This document shows positions 20,005 to 52,520 of a stretch of 64,000 nt of DNA, piece by piece. The stretch is from Cyanophora paradoxa CCMP329 (lineage: Eukaryota; Plantae; Glaucophyta): assembly GCA_004431415.1 (NCBI GenBank), contig QPMI01000482.1, positions 124,001-188,000 of the forward strand, written 5' to 3'. The notes below the pieces were generated by a model. That model was not told where the DNA came from. It searched no databases and saw only the letters and a list, made by a program, of their open reading frames with translations. The position numbers and the translations under genes were made by a program. Position 1 is the first letter of the stretch, and each line of letters starts with the position of its first letter.

Positions 20005-22144
20005 ATGCCAGGCGACGCAGACAGGCCGGAAGCGCACGAAGTGGCTGCAAACCTTGGCCGGCTTCGGACGCTGCTGCAGCTTGTCGGGGACCGCGAAGCG
20101 AAGAAGCGCCGGCTGGTCCAGCTAACCAGCGAGCTCGTAGCTCGAGAGATTGCCGAGGGAACGCAGCCATCGCCGCTCCTGCAGCTGCCAGCGGAGCTCT
20201 TCGACGCTGTCGTGTCGTTGCTAGACGCAGTGAGCGCGCGCAGCCTGTCACAGACGTGCAGGAGCGCGAGAAGCGCGGTGGCCAGGACCGGTGCGCCGCC
20301 TTGGAGCCCGGGCCGCTGGCCGCGCTGGATCGTTGACCTCACGCCCCCCCCGCAGCGTCGAGCGCGTGGCGAGAAGTGGCGTGCGGGGGCGACCTCGCCG
20401 CCGACCCTTGCGTGACGCGCTCGCTGGGCGCCGACCCCTCCCGCTGCCACGAGCGGGTCCGCTTCGCCAGCGCGCCCTTTGAGCCTCGCGTCCGACGGTC
20501 GCCGGGGCGCGCCCACGGGAGAGCAGGTCTTCGCGCACGGCTCGCTGCTGGGGCTCTTCCACAGGGGCGTGGACGAGGACGGGCGCGCCGCGACGCGCCT
20601 CGACGAGGTCGCCCTCCTCGACCTCGGCGCGCCCCGATCGAATCTCTTCCTTTCACCCGCATCCACTTCTAAGGAGCGGCAGGCGCGGAGCGGCCGGCGT
20701 GGCGGGTGGTCCGGCTGGCCGGGGCGCCGCCGGCGCGCTGGGGCCACGCCCTCGTGGTCATCGCAGGGGACCTCGCCCTCGTGGGCGGCGAGAGCGCCTC
20801 GGGCCGCGCCCAAACGTCCGCTCGCGACCCGCAAGCCCGCGCCCTCCCTTGCCCCTCTTCTCACAGAGAGCGCAGGTGCATGCTGCCGCTGGCCGCCCTC
20901 CTGTCGGCGGCGGCCGAGGGAGAGGCGCCTACCCTCCCCGCCTGGTCCCCTACCCCCCACTCAGCATCCTTCTCCCGCGCCCTCTCCGCCTGCTCCTGCG
21001 GTAACTTCTGCGACCGCGTACCCCTGCGCACCCCTCGAGCGGGCGGTCCGGGGGCCGCAGGCCGGGCGGGCGTGGTGCTCAGCAGCCGGAGCATGGGTAC
21101 CCCCGGGCCCTCTGGCGCGGCCGAGTTTCTCTTCGCCACGACCGTCCTCAGGGGTACGATGCTCTCTTGCATCGGACTTCCCTGTACCCCCATCGACGAT
21201 CTTTTCTATCAGCGCCGTCAGGGGAGGTGCACTCGTACTACGAGCAGCTGCCAGGGCCGGCGGCGGGGCGCCCCTCCCCACTCCTGCTCGCCTCGCTCCT
21301 CCTCCCCGCGGCCGGCGCCACGGATTTGGGTTCGATTGCGGCGGGGGAGGAGGCCTGGCGCCTGCTGCTCGTCCTGCCCGACGAGGCCCTCGAGCTCGCC
21401 GGCGGTGCGCGGGCGCCGGCTCGAGTCCCGCCCGCCCCGCCTCTCCCCCGCCCGACGCCGGCCCTTCCCCGCAGGCCTGCAGGAGCTGGTGCCCGGGTGG
21501 CGGGCGGTGCGGTGGCGGGCGGCGCGGGCCCTCCCGAGGCCCCGCCCTCCCCGTGGCCCTCCCCGACGCCGCCCCGCCGCCACGCCGCCTCCGCTGCCGC
21601 CGCCGAGCCGGCCCAGGCACCCGCCCCCGGCAGCCCCTCCCCGCCCCCGAGCCGACGGCCGCGGCCGCGGAGGGACGCCCTCGCCGGCGGGGGCGGGCCG
21701 CAAGAGGCGCCGCGAGGCGGCGCCCCTCTTCCCGCGCGCACTCCAGGCCGCCCTCGCCCTCCAGCCGCCCGCCGAGCCGCACGCGCCCGTGCCCCTCCTG
21801 CTCCTCGGGCCCGTACCCTTTCAGTACTCCCTCGGTTCGCCGGCCGCCCCATTCGCCTTCGCTTCCGCAAGGCTGCCCGTCCTGAAATCACGACGGCAGG
21901 AGGGGAGTCCGCGCCGGCCCCCGCCCAATGCCGGCTGGCGCCCCCGCCGGCGCCGGCAGGGGTCGATGCAGCCTCCTGGGGCCGGAGCGAGCCTCGCAGC
22001 CCCGAGCGCGACGCTGCGCCCAGCGGCGGGCGACGGCCTCTGCTGGTGCCTCTCGGGGGGGCGGGGGGCGCGCCGCTGGCGGCGCAGCTGCGGCCCTGGG
22101 ACATTGCCCGGCTCGCCGTCCTGCAGCTGCCGCAGGGCGCGTAG
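20005..22144 (+). CDS. F-box protein with Kelch-like repeats, multi-exon
   Basis: F-box LLQLPAELFDAVVSLLDAVSARSLSQTCR and Kelch-like PPARWGHALVVIAGDLALVGGE. Divergent from the SET gene (about 150 bp apart). Confidence 0.7.
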
Positions 22145-22328
22145 AGGGGCGTACACGTGCGCGAGCCTGCGACTTCAGGCCGCGCCGCGCTGCAGCTGCC
22201 TGTGCTGGCGCCCGAATTCTGACAGCTAATTATATAAGTTCGAGCTTGGATTAAGCTGGCGGCTAGCTGCTGGCATTTCCAGGCCTGCTAGCTTTAGGTT
22301 CGGCTCGAGCTCCGGGGCGGCAAAGAGA

Positions 22329-22501
22329 GGAGAGACAGCAGCTCGGAGTTCGGTTAAGCGCTCTTTCCAACTGAGCTACGCGACTACCGAACGCCTGGGC
22401 ACGAAGTCCCAGGCGTCCAGCATTGACGTCGCGGGGGGATTCGAACCCCCGACCTCTCGCTTAGCAGGCGTTGACGATGTATTCCTTTGCTAGAGCTCTC
22501 C
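22329..22501 (-). ncRNA. YrlA-like (Y RNA-like) circularly permuted tRNA mimic, copy 1
   Basis: Order on the minus strand: GGAGAG...GGAATACATCG, TAAGC, T arm GGGGG-TTCGAAT-CCCCC, CGCGAC [43-nt loop] GTCGCG, D arm TAGCTCAGTTGGAAAGAGC, GCTTA, then CTGTCTCTCC. The ends pair and there is no anticodon loop. Confidence 0.7.
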
Positions 22502-22611
22502 AAAAAGCTTCAACAGGGGATAACTGGTGGTAATCTACACAGCGATCGGACCTGCTGGTCGCGAGTTGTTGAGTTACTATCAGTTACTTGTGACGTTCGG
22601 TTGCAAAGTGA

Positions 22612-22745
22612 GGAGAGACAGGCGGCTCGGATTTATCTGAAGCGCTCTGCCACTGAGCTACGCGACTTCCGTCGCGGGGGGACTTGAACCCCCGACCTCT
22701 CGCTCCCAATGCGTAACGATGTATTCCTTAGCCAAAAAGCTCTCC
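22612..22745 (-). ncRNA. YrlA-like (Y RNA-like) circularly permuted tRNA mimic, copy 2
   Basis: Same order as copy 1. The acceptor stem CGCGAC/GTCGCG is closed by a GGAA tetraloop, the terminal stem is GGAGAG/CTCTCC, and there are compensatory changes relative to copy 1. Confidence 0.75.
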
Positions 22746-23045
22746 GACTAGTCGTGCCACGGTGGTAGACATTAGAAGGGTCCAGCCAGTAGACGGGCCG
22801 AGCGCGAGACCCGGGCAGCCTCTAATTACGTATACGTCCAGCGGTAGCGTCGCGGCCGTGATCTGCAGCCAACAGCTCGCCTTGTCAGTTGAAAGTGTCA
22901 GTGTCATCAAGTGACAGCTGCAGCCTGCAGGTAGAGGCACTGCTTTCAGCTGCGACGACGGCTCGCGGCCAGATCGCCCGGCGGCGTCGTGGGAGAGCAG
23001 CCCGGCAGTCTCCAGGAGGTCTTTGAGCATCTTCGAACCGCTTTG

Positions 23046-23628
23046 ATGCCGAAGGACAAGCGAGCGAAGCCGAGCGCTGGCGACCCGGAGGCGCCTGCCG
23101 CCCCTATCCGGGCAGATGACGACCCCTCTTCGTCCGCCGAGGCCCTGCCAGGTCCGCGAACGTCTTCAGGTGTTTCGCCACACAACCCGCGGCTTCGCTA
23201 ACGCGCAGGGGTCAGGCGAGGACGAGAAGCCCACCGCGTGGGAGCGGTGCACAGAGCCGTGGGTTCCGGGGGCGACGCCCTACGCCAGGAACCTCTGGCT
23301 CGCCCTCTTCCTCATCACCTCTGTTCTGTGCGCGCGCTGGGGCGCCGCCGGGCTGGCCGCGGGCCGCTCGCCTAAGCGCTAGCGCGCGTACGCGTGAGCT
23401 CCAGGCGCCCCGGCCTTGACTCGAGCGGGACGCCCGCGCGGGGGCGCCGGCAGGCTCTCGGCCGGCGGCCTCTTCTGGCACCTCTCGCGGGCGCCCGAGC
23501 AGGAGGCGCATGCGAAGCTCTGGTTCTGGCTGGCCGTCGGAGGCTTCGGCACGGGGGGCGCCTTCGGCCTCTGGCTCCTCGGCCTCTGGGGCTTCATCAA
23601 GCTCTTCGAGGGCGTCCGCTTCTGTTAG
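23046..23628 (+). CDS. Small hypothetical membrane protein, multi-exon
   Basis: MPKDKRAKP... followed by hydrophobic segments NLWLALFLITS and LWFWLAVGGFGTGGAFGLWLLGLWGFIKL. Confidence 0.5.
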
Positions 23629-43717: not shown

Positions 43718-44936
43718 TTAAAAGTTCGAGACTTTCAGGGTAGAGATGTTGTAGCCATTGAGGACCATAACATTGTGTCGTAGGCATAGATGTCAACCTG
43801 AACAGGAGCCGCATCAGTGCATCCAGAAACAGTGAGATCCATGTAACTCGAGCTGCTGTTGAAGAAATCCTGGTAACCCATAACCGAGTTCCGAAGCGAA
43901 TCTTTTCCGGACTTGGAAAGAACAATTCCATAAACATTTCCAGACTCGAATCCGTAGGTGGTATTGCCCACAGTAACACCCTTGTAATGAGAGGAATGTG
44001 ATTGACAGCAGAGAGGAAACCGGAAATGGTTTGTTAGAGATATCAAGGGAGCGATTGTTGTGGAAGATCTGGAACTGATCGATTTTAACATCCGAAACAT
44101 GACCACAGAAATCAGAATGAGTGTAGGTGTTGAGTTTGTTCACCTCTCGAACAGTCATGAGAATCGAATGAACCAGACCGGAAACATTAGCAAGTGTAAC
44201 CTCGACCGATTCACCAGCATCAGCAGTTTTAAGCGCTCGGGTCTTCTTGTGGATGACCTCTGTGATCGGGATGCGAATGCCACCTTGTTCGTTTGCCATC
44301 TTTAGGAGTGTCTCAGCCTCAGCCGAAGCGATGTTTACGAATTGGCAGATCAGGGAGCAATCCGCAAAGGTAACAGATCCACCGCAGGAACTTTGACTAT
44401 CCAGCATCACGGAAATCCACCTCAATCGTTGGCATATCCGCCAGCGTACATAATGGAAAGTAAGCATCATCCCAGAAAGCAGCGGGGATTCTAACGATGT
44501 ATTCCATTGCTTCATCTGTGCTTTCACGATCTGTCTCTTTGAAGTAACGAGAGAAGCATACATGCTGCTCATGGTAGCGTGATCATTATCGACCAGGGCG
44601 TTTACAGTGATCCAATCACCAGGGATAATATACTTGAAACCACCATGAACGAAACGGACCTCATTAATAAAAGAAGAACCACCATTGGGAGGGTGCAGGC
44701 TACACCACCACCAGTGGCAATCTTGAAATAGAGCGAAACACCAGCAAGGAGTTGCTTGCGAGGTAGATCAAAGTAAGCGGTATTCTTGAAGCCAAAAGTG
44801 TTGCCTCGGGGACGAACTTGCTCGAGGAATGGTTTGTATTTGGGTTGGTTCCGATTTGGAGACCAGGGGAAAGATAAATTTGATCGGAACCGGGAGTTAC
44901 GAGGAGTTCCTTCAGGGTAGTTCCAGTGAGTGCCAT
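43718..44936 (-). pseudogene. MCP of module 2, duplicate copy with multiple indels
   Basis: Matches 51294..52520 apart from single-base deletions. Confidence 0.7.
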
Positions 44937-51293: not shown

Positions 51294-52520
51294 TTAAAAG
51301 TTCGAGACTTTCAGGGTAGAGATGTTGTAGCCATTGAGGACCATAACATTGTGTCGTAGGGCATAGATGTCAACCTGAACAGGAGCCGCATCAGTGCATC
51401 CAGAAACAGTGAGATCCATGTAACTCGAGCTGCTGTTGAAGAAATCCTGGTAACCCATAACCGAGTTCCGAAGCGAATCTTTTCCGGACTTGGAAAGAAC
51501 AATTCCATAAACATTTCCAGACTCGAATCCGTAGGTGGTATTGCCCACAGTAACACCCTTGTAATGAGAGGGAATGTGATTGACAGCAGAGAGGAAACCG
51601 GAAATGGGTTTGTTAGAGATATCAAGGGAGCGATTGTTGTGGAAGATCTGGAACTGATCGATTTTAACATCCGAAACATGACCACAGAAATCAGAATGAG
51701 TGTAGGTGTTGAGTTTGTTCACCTCTCGAACAGTCATGAGAATCGAATGAACCAGACCGGAAACATTAGCAAGTGTAACCTCGACCGATTCACCAGCATC
51801 AGCAGTTTTAAGCGCTCGGGTCTTCTTGTGGATGACCTCTGTGATCGGGATGCGAATGCCACCTTGTTCGTTTGCCATCTTTAGGAGTGTCTCAGCCTCA
51901 GCCGAAGCGATGTTTACGAATTGGCAGATCAGGGAGCAATCCGCAAAGGTAACAGATCCACCGGCAGGAACTTTGACTATCCCAGCATCACGGAAATCCA
52001 CCTCAATCGTTGGCATATCCGCCAGCGTACATAATGGAAAGTAAGCATCATCCCAGAAAGCAGCGGGGATTCTAACGATGTATTCCATTGCTTCATCTGT
52101 GCTTTCACGATCTGTCTCTTTGAAGTAACCGAGAGAAGCATACATGCTGCTCATGGTAGCGTGATCATTATCGACCAGGGCGTTTACAGTGATCCAATCA
52201 CCAGGGATAATATACTTGAAACCACCATGAACGAAACGGACCTCATTAATAAAAGAAGAACCACCATTGGGGAGGGTGCAGGCTACACCACCACCAGTGG
52301 CAATCTTGAAATAGAGCGAAACACCAGCAAGGAGTTGCTTGCGAGGTAGATCAAAGTAAGCGGTATTCTTGAAGCCAAAAGTGTTGCCTCGGGGACGAAC
52401 TTGCTCGAGGAATGGTTTGTATTTGGGGTTGGTTCCGATTTGGAGACCAGGGGAAAGATAAATTTGATCGGAACCGGGAGTTACGAGGAGTTCCTTCAGG
52501 GTAGTTCCAGTGAGTGCCAT
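51294..52520 (-). CDS. Major capsid protein, module 2, 408 aa
   Basis: Colinear paralog of the module 1 MCP (roughly 60-65% identical by eye). Confidence 0.85.
   Translation of the reverse strand: MALTGTTLKELLVTPGSDQIYLSPGLQIGTNPKYKPFLEQVRPRGNTFGFKNTAYFDLPRKQLLAGVSLYFKIATGGGVACTLPNGGSSFINEVRFVHGGFKYIIPGDWITVNALVDNDHATMSSMYASLGYFKETDRESTDEAMEYIVRIPAAFWDDAYFPLCTLADMPTIEVDFRDAGIVKVPAGGSVTFADCSLICQFVNIASAEAETLLKMANEQGGIRIPITEVIHKKTRALKTADAGESVEVTLANVSGLVHSILMTVREVNKLNTYTHSDFCGHVSDVKIDQFQIFHNNRSLDISNKPISGFLSAVNHIPSHYKGVTVGNTTYGFESGNVYGIVLSKSGKDSLRNSVMGYQDFFNSSSSYMDLTVSGCTDAAPVQVDIYALRHNVMVLNGYNISTLKVSNF

Follow-up and report, generated by a model that had tools for sequence, protein, structure and literature searches.

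Animal Y RNAs carry their Ro60 site in a terminal stem, have no tRNA-like module and end in an RNA polymerase III U-tail. The bacterial YrlA RNAs, which Chen et al. 2014 (PMC4201824) list for 254 bacteria and 22 phages, are in addition mimics of tRNA, and a crystal structure is available for the tRNA-like domain of Salmonella YrlA (Wang et al. 2018, bioRxiv 10.1101/312249). YrlA-type Y RNAs are so far described only from bacteria and phages; among the papers naming YrlA that our literature search listed (30 of 37), none deals with a eukaryote. Another group of genes with a partly similar layout, the circularly permuted tRNA genes, has been reported from algae and from Thermofilum by Soma et al. 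in 2007 and Maruyama et al. in 2010.

We analysed a 64-kb stretch of nuclear DNA from the alga Cyanophora paradoxa (hereafter, the window), in which the initial annotation had placed two tandem YrlA-type genes on the minus strand, at 22329-22745. As its best explanation, the locus probably comprises YrlA-type Y RNA genes, or relics of such genes, that belong to a subfamily of phages and some bacteria in which the RNA gene lies directly beside rsr (Ro60/TROVE). Whether the RNAs have a function in the alga is an evenly balanced question.

Layout of the two units

Direct reading of the minus strand located two tandem units, 22745..22612 (unit 1) and 22501..22329 (unit 2), at the positions given originally. 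In each unit the order is leader, T arm, loop-closed 6-bp acceptor helix, D arm, trailer. The 5′ part of both consists of GGAGAG, GGAATACATCGT, CGC plus a 7-nt loop plus GCG, AG and AGGTC; the T arm (GGGGG / TTCRANT / CCCCC) and the acceptor helix (CGCGAC / GTCGCG) follow, and the 3′ part comprises TA, the D arm, G, CTT..., TCCGAGC... and CTCTCC. A GGAA tetraloop closes the acceptor in unit 1, which comes first on the minus strand (this tetraloop had been misassigned to copy 2); in unit 2 the closure is a perfect hairpin of 43 nt. The parts are as follows.

Unit 1
22612..22745, minus strand: the whole unit, 134 nt in the boundaries of the initial annotation
22742..22748, minus strand: GUCGGAG, which fits GNYGNAR, a relaxed version (loose form) of the Ro60/Rsr-binding motif GNCGAAN0-1G, overlapping the GGAGAG 5′ strand (22740-22745)
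22734..22738, minus strand: T5 run within the leader, in the conserved block AGCUUUUUGG
22716..22727, minus strand: GGAAUACAUCGU, whose GGA is the 5′ strand of helix 2 and pairs with UCC at 22629-22631
22701..22713, minus strand: local hairpin CGC-AUUGGGA-GCG, the 7-nt loop and inner part of the anticodon-like stem, equivalent to positions 29-41 of tRNA
22677..22700, minus strand: A42 G43 (paired with U28 C27 at 22641-22642), variable loop AGGUC and T arm GGGGG-UUCAAGU-CCCCC
22661..22676, minus strand: closed acceptor helix CGCGAC-GGAA-GUCGCG, 6 bp and tetraloop
22640..22660, minus strand: U8 A9, D arm GCUC-AGUGGCA-GAGC, G26, C27 U28 U
22603..22631, minus strand: trailer, with UCCGAGCC (3′ strand of helix 2), GCCUGU, CUCUCC (pairs with GGAGAG) and the conserved UCACUUUGC

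Unit 2
22329..22501, minus strand: the whole unit, 173 nt in the boundaries of the initial annotation
22508..22514, minus strand: GUUGAAG, a loose form of the Ro60 motif, directly upstream of a T5 run (22502-22506)
22474..22501, minus strand: leader, with GGAGAG, CUCU, AGC (pairs with GCU of the trailer), AAA and GGAAUACAUCGU
22458..22470, minus strand: local hairpin CGC-CUGCUAA-GCG, the anticodon-like arm
22434..22457, minus strand: A42 G43, AGGUC and T arm GGGGG-UUCGAAU-CCCCC
22379..22433, minus strand: acceptor helix CGCGAC/GUCGCG with a 43-nt insert (22385-22427), forming a long perfect hairpin
Within 22320..22378, minus strand: U8 A9, D arm GCUC-AGUUGGAAA-GAGC, G26, CUU and a linker
Within 22320..22378, minus strand, after the linker: UCCGAGCU, GCUGU, CUCUCC and UCUCUUUGC

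Judging from homology, the RNAs are probably longer than these boundaries imply, spanning ~22603-22748 (unit 1) and ~22320-22514 (unit 2). In unit 1, the GGA of helix 2 is followed by the UAC element conserved in bacterial Y RNAs (Rfam consensus GgaaCUAc). The elbow and tertiary nucleotides of tRNA are intact in both units: U8, A14, the G15:C48 Levitt pair, G18 G19, U54 U55 C56 and A58. The terminal Y-RNA stem is long and irregular, being made of GGA/UCC, GGC/GCC or AGC/GCU, and GGAGAG/CUCUCC. The acceptor hairpin of unit 2 has a folding energy of -36.2 kcal/mol (z = -6.35), and its 43-nt insert occurs only once in the window.

Across the window, the T-loop, D-arm and trailer motifs were confined to the two units (chance expectations 0.25, 1.9 and 0, respectively). 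The sequence GGAATACATCG is also present at 44495 and 52076, where it lies in an AT-rich, duplicated segment that looks coding and lacks a tRNA-like module, and we took it as a chance occurrence.

The units resemble YrlA in the succession of stem, T arm, acceptor stem-loop (closed), D arm and stem, and in the tandem arrangement of the genes. They also have its tRNA elbow nucleotides, including G15:C48, the GGAA-UAC sequence that is conserved in helix 2 and, before the T arm, a stem-loop that Chen et al. 2014 (PMC4201824) named 'V'. Both types of acceptor also have counterparts, namely the 6-bp helix with a tetraloop in Salmonella (as in unit 1) and a much longer helix in some cyanobacteria (as in unit 2). 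What sets the algal units apart from YrlA is their location in a eukaryotic nucleus, the absence of rsr within 4 kb or indeed within the 64 kb, the presence of only a loose GNCGAAN0-1G motif, and an Rfam score below the gathering level. With animal Y RNAs (RF00019) they have in common a long terminal stem in which the two ends of the RNA pair, but they possess a tRNA-like module and end without a U-tail; the Rfam Y_RNA model (RF00019) gave no match in 22000-23100 at E values up to 10.

Outside the two units, the hairpin in the spacer was considered as a stem-only Y RNA and rejected: it folds well, but its GGUCCGA motif is no more frequent than expected by chance. The stretch upstream of unit 1 that is the counterpart of this hairpin shows no fold.

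Relatives beside rsr in phages and bacteria

In a comparison with Rfam, of the kind suggested with the original claim, the YrlA model (RF02553) was the sole meaningful family match of the units, at 43.4 bits for unit 1 and 35.9 bits for unit 2 (E = 4.5e-8 and 6.4e-6, respectively). Both scores, however, fall under the gathering score of 69 bits. On the same model, eight rsr-adjacent phage members of the same subfamily scored 36-45 bits, and among the bacterial YrlAs that we retrieved only one exceeded 69 bits (L007, 76.1 bits); its locus has the textbook layout, with rtcR, rsr and a YrlB/YrlA array.

Pattern scans yielded relatives of the same build from a metagenome contig, two bacterial MAGs and ~35 viral contigs. 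Four further pattern matches, L001, L003, L006 (a coding sequence) and L004 (the 3′ end of a tRNA or tmRNA), were dropped as chance. As assessed with an Rsr profile, rsr adjoins the relative in 21 of the 31 loci that hold a high-scoring member. IMG/VR phage contigs with a YrlA-like RNA beside rsr include L023, L039, L047, L055, L056, L083 and others, and the genome of Gordonia phage Sixama (MN484601.1) contains an unannotated relative at ~88101-88261, 1.2 kb downstream of a gene for a 'Ro-like RNA binding protein'. A 59-aa fragment encoded in L002 was recognized as the C-terminal part of Rsr by BLASTP against two full Rsr proteins; the same fragment gave no match in a PDB sequence search.

We built a covariance model (R1) from 26 non-algal members, leaving the algal sequences out. 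R1 matched unit 2 at 22354-22470 with 82.5 bits (E = 2e-19) and unit 1 end to end, at 22593-22757, with 74.7 bits (E = 2e-17), and these were its only matches in the 64-kb window. At artefactual tRNA-tRNA junctions, the maximum scores of R1 were 53-68 bits, below those of both algal units. The core of the algal units is 85-89% identical to the phage members. The YrlA-type reading is supported by homology to RNAs encoded beside rsr, and it is very likely that both units are members of the YrlA-type Y RNA family.

The algal units and the phage RNAs share one succession of elements: ...UAC leads into a local stem with a loop of 7 nt, and GCGAG, AGGUC and the T arm come before the 6-bp acceptor with its tetraloop, the D arm, G and CUUA.... 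The Sixama unit and unit 1 have the AUUGGGA loop and the UUCAAGU T loop in common, and the trailer of unit 1 aligns with that of the phage unit in L083 (UCCGAGGCCGUCUGUUCCCCC). On the other hand, the local stem of the phage RNAs has 4-5 bp (UUCGC/GCGAG), whereas the algal one is reduced to CGC/GCG with 2-3 extra bases before it. Helix 2, which is 8 bp long in the phages, is interrupted in the alga (GGCU-AA-GGA / UCC-G-AGCC) and continues into an extra GGAGAG/CUCUCC helix. Moreover, the phage members lie within ~250 nt of rsr and the algal units do not. In a tree of the family, just 4 of the 37 inner branches were well supported, so neither the donor nor the direction of transfer can be inferred from it.

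An anticodon-like arm and probable selection on the fold

The initial annotation had stated that there is no anticodon loop. This was incorrect, as a 7-nt loop closed by CGC/GCG (AUUGGGA in unit 1 and CUGCUAA in unit 2) occupies the place of the tRNA anticodon arm and is supported by covariation. The anticodon-like stem amounts to 5 bp, of which three are local and two involve the first two bases after the D arm. By comparison, the trailer of canonical YrlA pairs through five bases with positions 39-43; in the algal units only two do so while the other three pairs are local, which results in a capped, 7-nt anticodon-like loop. The three local CGC/GCG pairs covary across the family, although the 26 sequences used for the pair counts had been chosen for an intact inner stem, so that the percentage of paired cells is inflated for this stem. 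Among these 26 relatives, covariation was also found at all six pairs of the acceptor helix (97% of cells paired) and at four of the five pairs of the T stem.

As to the stems that had been said to covary between the two copies, the exchange of AGC/GCT for GGC/GCC is a real compensatory change. For GCTTA/TAAGC versus GCTTC/GGAGC, the complementarity does exist in the sequence, but the helix finds no family-wide support. We rejected this long-range helix, in which positions 36-40 pair with G26 and four further bases, as the main fold: in the family, 79% of its cells are paired, no compensatory change occurs, and three of the five pairs vary only by breaking. Since the algal pair taken alone shows one compensatory change in this helix, it may represent an alternative conformer.

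Units 1 and 2 differ at only 2 of 63 paired positions, compared with 18 of 67 unpaired positions (p = 1.6e-4), and the two differences at paired positions make up one compensatory pair. The flanks of the two units have diverged beyond alignment. The avoidance of paired positions by the differences between the units indicates selection on RNA structure.

Origin, partner and competing explanations

The locus of ~420 bp is flanked on both sides by GC-rich, host-type nuclear DNA with no bacterial genes, and it stands out as a local dip in GC content (55-62% vs 70-90% around it). Twenty neighbouring ORFs had no match in Pfam or PHROGs, and their translations are Arg/Pro/Ala/Gly-rich noise; the locus thus has no foreign-gene island linked to it. 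The flanks contain no terminal repeats, target-site duplications or junction signatures.

The units had also been described as unlinked from any Ro60 gene, and our searches agree: Pfam revealed no TROVE or vWA_Ro60 domain in the neighbouring ORFs, tblastn with two Rsr proteins detected no Rsr coding sequence in the whole 64-kb window (E > 2), and an Rsr profile had no match among all window ORFs of at least 90 aa. A literature search for Ro60/TROVE in Cyanophora paradoxa found no report, which is not evidence of absence. The exact GNCGAAN0-1G sequence, the putative Rsr contact, is absent from both units; among the rsr-linked relatives it occurs in 2 of 18, and its loose form in 9 of 18. With regard to transcription, a T5 run lies inside the leader of unit 1 and just upstream of the leader of unit 2; if the RNA starts at or before GGAGAG, RNA polymerase III would terminate there without reaching the tRNA-like body. 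Neither unit is followed by a polymerase III terminator or T-run.

As the comparison shows, each unit folds as a complete tRNA-like body, with D arm, T arm and elbow nucleotides; because a loop closes the acceptor helix, this body has no free CCA end. The RNA's own 5′ and 3′ ends exit it within the 5′ strand of the anticodon-like stem and pair into the Y-RNA stem. The pair of units probably came into the algal nucleus horizontally, from DNA of bacteria or phages, either already in tandem or as a single unit that was then duplicated in the nucleus, with the structure being presumably maintained by selection thereafter. If transcribed, the stem could dock a Ro60-type ring protein while the tRNA-shaped head recruits a tRNA-binding partner, as in bacteria. 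The existence of a Ro60 partner for the algal RNAs is rather doubtful, and only tentatively do we suggest that the alga expresses horizontally acquired, phage-type tRNA-mimic Y RNAs along with a Ro60/Rsr-type protein encoded elsewhere or some other tRNA-binding partner.

Horizontal transfer appears more likely than ancient eukaryotic ancestry, as suggested by the position of the units among phage and bacterial sequences, with a core so similar to that of the phage members. For the same reason the algal units have by themselves no bearing on the origin of animal Y RNAs, and the relevance to that question anticipated by the initial annotation is unlikely.

The pair could instead be a non-functional relic, that is, a decaying insert of bacterial or phage DNA with Y RNA genes that are neither transcribed nor bound by a partner. 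We deem this possible, but less likely than not. A relic would account for the lack of rsr nearby, the degenerate Ro60 motif, the T5 runs in or before the leaders with no terminator after the units, the 43-nt insertion in the acceptor loop of unit 2 and the trimming of the inner stem to three local pairs (4-5 in the phage members). Decay, however, fits less well with differences that spare the helices, the sole helix change being compensatory, between units whose flanks can no longer be aligned. Every tRNA elbow nucleotide has been preserved in both units, and the 43-nt insert lengthens a helix rather than breaking it.

A further explanation would be that the units are circularly permuted tRNA genes like those of Cyanidioschyzon, Ostreococcus and Micromonas. 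Their transcripts would then be circularised after cleavage at a bulge-helix-bulge (BHB) motif made by leader and trailer, and RNase P and tRNase Z would open the circle to yield ordinary tRNAs. As in such genes, the 3′ half precedes the 5′ half and is joined to it through an initially closed acceptor, and leader and trailer pair with each other. The host, too, belongs to the algae, which are known for permuted tRNA genes, and the intervening sequences of 4 and 43 nt are inside the known range of 1-74 nt (PMC3978253). A 28/29 or 29/30 join would produce a canonical 5-bp stem, a 7-nt loop containing U33 and a purine at position 37, a variable loop of 5 nt, and G26. YrlA and permuted pre-tRNAs look alike according to Wang et al. 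2018 (bioRxiv 10.1101/312249).

Despite these similarities, we consider permuted tRNA genes very unlikely. By hand, no BHB (defined as a 4-bp central helix flanked by 3-nt bulges) could be drawn at 28/29 or 29/30, in either orientation, for both units. The anticodons are inconsistent, UGG (Pro) and GCU (Ser) on identical bodies, with no long variable arm; Ser tRNA requires a long variable arm. The closest relatives are found in phages and bacteria, beside rsr, and to our knowledge these are organisms without a tRNA splicing endonuclease. In both units the acceptor has 6 bp with an A1.G72 mismatch at the seventh position, and in unit 1 its closure is of only 4 nt; a 6-bp stem has been tied to RNase P resistance (Chen et al. 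2014, PMC4201824). Finally, the break inside the anticodon stem is outside the known junction types, 20/21, 37/38, 50/51 and 59/60 (PMC3978253). Computationally un-permuted constructs proved to be non-discriminating, as ARAGORN reported tRNAs for the majority of the 3,279 joins made per unit.

Chen et al. 2014 (PMC4201824) warned of false positives in which the T arm of one tRNA gene is combined with the D arm of the next, and both R1 and the Rfam YrlA model do return sub-threshold matches at true tRNA-tRNA junctions (such as tRNA-Met/tRNA-Ile of Sixama, 53 bits, and L075, 61 bits). An artefact of this kind, arising from tandem or decayed ordinary tRNA genes, is nonetheless extremely improbable here. 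In the window ARAGORN called no tRNA, and the score of the Rfam tRNA model was only 15.6 bits; no upstream 5′ or downstream 3′ halves are present that would complete ordinary tRNAs, the leader having no acceptor or D arm and the trailer no T arm. Furthermore, the acceptor strands are perfectly complementary around a 4-nt loop, and the homology to rsr-linked Y RNAs includes leader and trailer, with unit 1 aligning to R1 over its entire length. Bacterial or phage contamination mis-assembled into the algal contig would fit the exclusively prokaryotic or viral relatives and the local GC dip, but hardly a foreign-type segment of only ~420 bp amid GC-rich host-type DNA free of bacterial genes, holding two diverged copies with host-like spacer and flanks and no repeat or junction signatures, and it is scarcely credible.

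Irrespective of their present function, the YrlA-type units of Cyanophora offer a test case of whether a structured non-coding RNA from bacteria or phages can persist, and perhaps act, once transferred to a eukaryote, with or without Ro60; both copies are structurally intact and apparently under selection. Should they be expressed with a Ro60-type or other partner, they would constitute the first YrlA-type ribonucleoprotein in a eukaryote, and a bacterial non-coding RNA and its protein partner would have been domesticated together by a nuclear genome.

As a by-product, the analysis defined a large subfamily of phage Y RNAs with a complete anticodon-like arm and a variable triplet. Its members are under-scored by the Rfam model and are left unannotated, or may be called tRNA.

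Two tandem tRNA-mimic units

The minus strand of the window carries two tandem units, delimited by reading the sequence, that mimic a tRNA. Their T-loop pattern, D-arm string and trailer motif are confined to this pair in the 64-kb window searched, so that the observation made in the initial annotation is real and well above chance.

Features of the pair
22745..22612, minus strand: unit 1, 134 nt
22501..22329, minus strand: unit 2, 173 nt
22734-22738, minus strand: conserved AGCUUUUUGG block with T5 run, within the unit 1 leader
22502-22506, minus strand: conserved AGCUUUUUGG block with T5 run, directly upstream of the GGAGAG of unit 2
22385-22427, minus strand: 43-nt GC-rich perfect hairpin, an insertion placed precisely at the unit 2 acceptor loop
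22742-22748, minus strand: GUCGGAG, a loose GNYGNAR match, unit 1
22508-22514, minus strand: GUUGAAG, a loose GNYGNAR match, unit 2

Both units begin with GGAGAG, a short variable stretch, GGAAUACAUCGU, a 7-nt loop between CGC and GCG, AG and AGGUC. There follow the T arm (GGGGG/UUCRANU/CCCCC in both), a closed 6-bp helix (CGCGAC/GUCGCG in both), UA, the D arm, G, CUU..., UCCGAGC... and finally CUCUCC. All tRNA elbow nucleotides are intact. The 6-bp helix is closed by GGAA in unit 1 and by the 43-nt hairpin in unit 2, which lengthens the acceptor helix to give an arm of very high stability (z = -6.4); similarly long acceptor stems occur in some cyanobacterial YrlAs (Chen et al., PMC4201824). 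The leaders can be aligned in two ways, anchored on GGAGAGC (GGAGAG/CUCUCC being a candidate terminal helix) or, because the block with the T5 run is present at both units, on AGCUUUUUGG; the T5 runs also bear on which polymerase could transcribe the units.

The window is 66-76% GC up to ~32 kb and then drops sharply to ~40% GC, and the pair lies on the GC-rich side, 10 kb short of this switch, where GC content dips locally over ~1 kb. Neighbouring ORFs had no Pfam or PHROG match, and their translations are rich in Arg, Pro, Ala and Gly, as is usual for non-coding DNA of high GC content. The pair is not flanked by terminal repeats or target-site duplications. The units had been described as unlinked to any Ro60 gene, and indeed no Ro60/Rsr coding sequence was detected in the whole window, AT-rich half included.

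Relatives and their linkage to rsr

ARAGORN found no tRNA in the window, and no Rfam family reached its gathering score there. In a sensitive Rfam scan, YrlA (RF02553) was the sole meaningful match, so the proposed check with this model pointed to the expected family but fell short of its gathering score (43.4 and 35.9 bits against 69). Since any permuted tRNA-like order might score with the Rfam model, true relatives were sought. The first search, with a pattern combining the conserved leader motif and the T loop, returned two clear homologues, on a phage-like metagenome contig (L002) and a 41-kb viral contig (L005), together with two bacterial MAGs bearing YrlA arrays (L007, Hyphomicrobiaceae; L008, Mariniblastus). 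Two more viral scans with a structural filter gave ~35 viral contigs with units built exactly as the algal ones.

We aligned 26 non-algal members (alignment A2), annotated their structure and built a covariance model, R1. In the window R1 had exactly two matches, unit 2 at 82.5 bits (E = 2e-19) and unit 1 at 74.7 bits (E = 2e-17, full length). When all fetched loci are ranked, the algal units come directly below the main member group (93-143 bits), which is mostly adjacent to rsr, the bacterial Ro60 gene. They outscore canonical bacterial YrlAs (L007, 55 bits) as well as tRNA-tRNA junctions (maximum 53-68 bits), a known false positive for YrlA (Chen et al., PMC4201824). In their cores, unit 2 and phage members share 85-89% identity, and the unit 1 trailer aligns with that of a viral contig, L083. 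Because eight rsr-adjacent phage members themselves score only 36-45 bits with the Rfam YrlA model, the sub-gathering score is a trait of the whole subfamily and not evidence against the algal units.

A profile from Rsr homologues located rsr beside 21 of the 31 loci holding a high-scoring member, usually starting within ~250 nt downstream on the same strand; at several loci where none was found, the contig was cut off at that edge. At the start of L002 lies an Rsr C-terminal fragment that has the IGGFSD block and matches full-length Rsr at E = 4e-7. Directly after it, at 250-1104, come about six tandem Y-RNA-like genes, four scoring as YrlA and two further upstream read by eye; the array ends in a tRNA-Met. 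It also includes stem-only (YrlB-like) and T-arm-only forms, and one unit has the exact GUCGAAUG motif. The layout of L007 is the textbook one (rtcR, rsr with TROVE and Ro60-vWA, then YrlB/YrlA genes), and one of its YrlAs, at 76.1 bits, exceeds the Rfam gathering score. In Gordonia phage Sixama (MN484601.1), an unannotated unit (L089 2963-3123, ~88101-88261 of the accession; R1 64 bits) is located 1.2 kb downstream of a 'Ro-like RNA binding protein' gene, with tRNA-Gln and tRNA-Ile on either side, and has the AUUGGGA loop and UUCAAGU T loop of algal unit 1.

The YrlA-type assignment of the units, upheld by a model that had no algal input and by the rsr linkage of the relatives, is thus very probably correct. 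Readings as tRNA junctions or contamination are unlikely.

The anticodon-like arm and the permuted-tRNA alternative

In A2 the T stem covaries at 4 of 5 pairs, the closed acceptor helix at 6 of 6 (97% of cells paired) and helix 2 of the Y stem at all 8, with just 68% of cells paired in the latter, probably owing to loose alignment there. The GGAAUAC of the conserved 11-mer noted at first reading corresponds to the Rfam consensus GgaaCUAc, i.e., helix 2 plus the UA kink.

The initial annotation saw no anticodon loop, a statement that does not hold for the family, which has a chimeric stem and a 7-nt loop at that place. Positions 29-31 pair locally with 39-41 (CGC/GCG, CGA/UCG, GGA/UCC, AGC/GCU, UCC/GGA), and the dinucleotide directly after N26 pairs with positions 43 and 42 (CU/AG, CG/CG, CC/GG, UG/CA, GC/GC, CA/UG, AU/AU). 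The 26 sequences were picked for an intact inner stem, so its 100% pairing is partly circular, but the compensatory double changes are not. This local hairpin before the T arm is most likely the 'V' stem-loop of Chen et al. (PMC4201824); in the phage-type subfamily it has anticodon-arm geometry. The long-range helix of UAAGC with GCUUA, proposed earlier, fared less well across A2 (79% of cells paired, no double change, broken wherever positions 39-40 vary). Between units 1 and 2 alone it shows one compensatory change (U-A to G-C), so it may form as an alternative conformer in the algal RNAs.

The exact Rsr-contact motif, GNCGAAN0-1G, was found in neither algal unit and in only 2 of 18 rsr-linked relatives, whereas the looser GNYGNAR occurs in 9 of the 18 and in both algal units.

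Circularly permuted tRNA genes are known from red and green algae (PMC3978253), and YrlA genes resemble them (Wang et al., bioRxiv 10.1101/312249). The succession of T arm, closed acceptor and D arm is compatible both with them and with YrlA, and only one joining (5' half to C27 U28 or U29, 3' half from C29 or G30) yields a canonical tRNA, the resulting anticodons being UGG (unit 1) and GCU (unit 2). We nevertheless consider it highly improbable that the units are such genes. A bulge-helix-bulge motif could not be drawn by hand at that junction in either orientation, and the known junction types are 20/21, 37/38, 50/51 and 59/60 (PMC3978253). The acceptor helix stops at 6 pairs: in each unit an A faces a G at position seven, and in unit 1 it is closed by no more than a tetraloop. 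Moreover, Pro and Ser anticodons would sit on identical bodies, the Ser one without a long variable arm. ARAGORN runs on un-permuted constructs were non-discriminating.

In the phage Y-RNA subfamily (L013, L022, L023, L032, L039, L045, L047, L049, L055, L081, L083 and other viral contigs), the 7-nt loop varies at positions 34-35 and is otherwise fixed. One form, C-U-N-N-U-A-A, is identical to loops of tRNAs reading ANN codons (CUUGUAA Thr, CUGUUAA Asn, CUGCUAA Ser, CUUUUAA Lys, CUUCUAA Arg, CUGAUAA Ile); the other, (A/U)UUGGGA, is Pro-like with G37. These RNAs may mimic particular anticodon loops, in which case they could be, e.g., decoys or substrates for anticodon nucleases, RNA repair or position-37 modification enzymes. 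L012 (6548-6714, 6805-6979) and L015 (235-425, 570-742) each have an NNUAA unit followed in tandem by a UUGGGA unit. In the alga these two loop types come in reverse order, and the stems within each phage pair differ, unlike those of the algal pair. ARAGORN calls 'tRNA-Ser(gct)' at L002 479-549 and 'tRNA-Asn(gtt)' at L005 373-446, both with poor acceptor stems; these false calls join Y-RNA leader, anticodon-like arm and T arm, and may be present in phage genome annotations.

Function and origin in the alga

Units 1 and 2 differ at 2 of 63 paired and 18 of 67 unpaired positions (Fisher p = 1.6e-4), the two paired differences being one compensatory G-C to A-U exchange, and their flanks are no longer alignable. 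The units are apparently under structural selection. Function would be favoured by the change-sparing helices, the intact elbow nucleotides and the helix-extending insert. Against it stand the missing Ro60/Rsr gene in the window, a local stem shorter than in phage members, the lack of a terminator 3' of the units and the T5 runs, which would keep RNA polymerase III from producing a transcript with the whole leader. A working Ro60 system in the alga is possible but less likely than not.

All relatives are phage or bacterial, several on GC-rich contigs and one in an actinobacteriophage, and in the unresolved family tree the two algal units match each other best, within a polytomy among phage members. 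From these comparisons, we read the pair as probably acquired horizontally, either as one unit or as a tandem, with subsequent evolution in place, and not as an ancient eukaryotic trait; a bearing on the origin of animal Y RNAs is therefore unlikely.

The YrlA-type family is already known. Among the papers listed as mentioning YrlA, none reports it in a eukaryote, and reviews of algal tRNA genes give no permuted or YrlA-like gene for Cyanophora; three bacterial tRNA-mimic families described in a 2026 preprint are distinct from this one. What is new is the occurrence of such RNAs in the nucleus of a eukaryote, with apparent selection on their structure and no Ro60 gene linked to them.

The spacer between the units folds into a stable hairpin (22502-22562, minus strand; -18.3 kcal/mol, z = -3.5). 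Its GGUCCGA and GUGUAG..UUAC strings are also seen in phage Y-RNA leaders, and its last bases are U5. That it might be a stem-only Y RNA is only a possibility, because GGUCCGA occurs in the window at chance frequency and no such fold forms in the corresponding stretch upstream of unit 1. Two near-identical, coding-looking AT-rich segments ~7.6 kb apart (44250-44650 and 51830-52230, minus strand) both carry GGAATACATCGTTA, a 14-nt match to the unit 1 leader, without a tRNA-like module; this match is probably due to chance.
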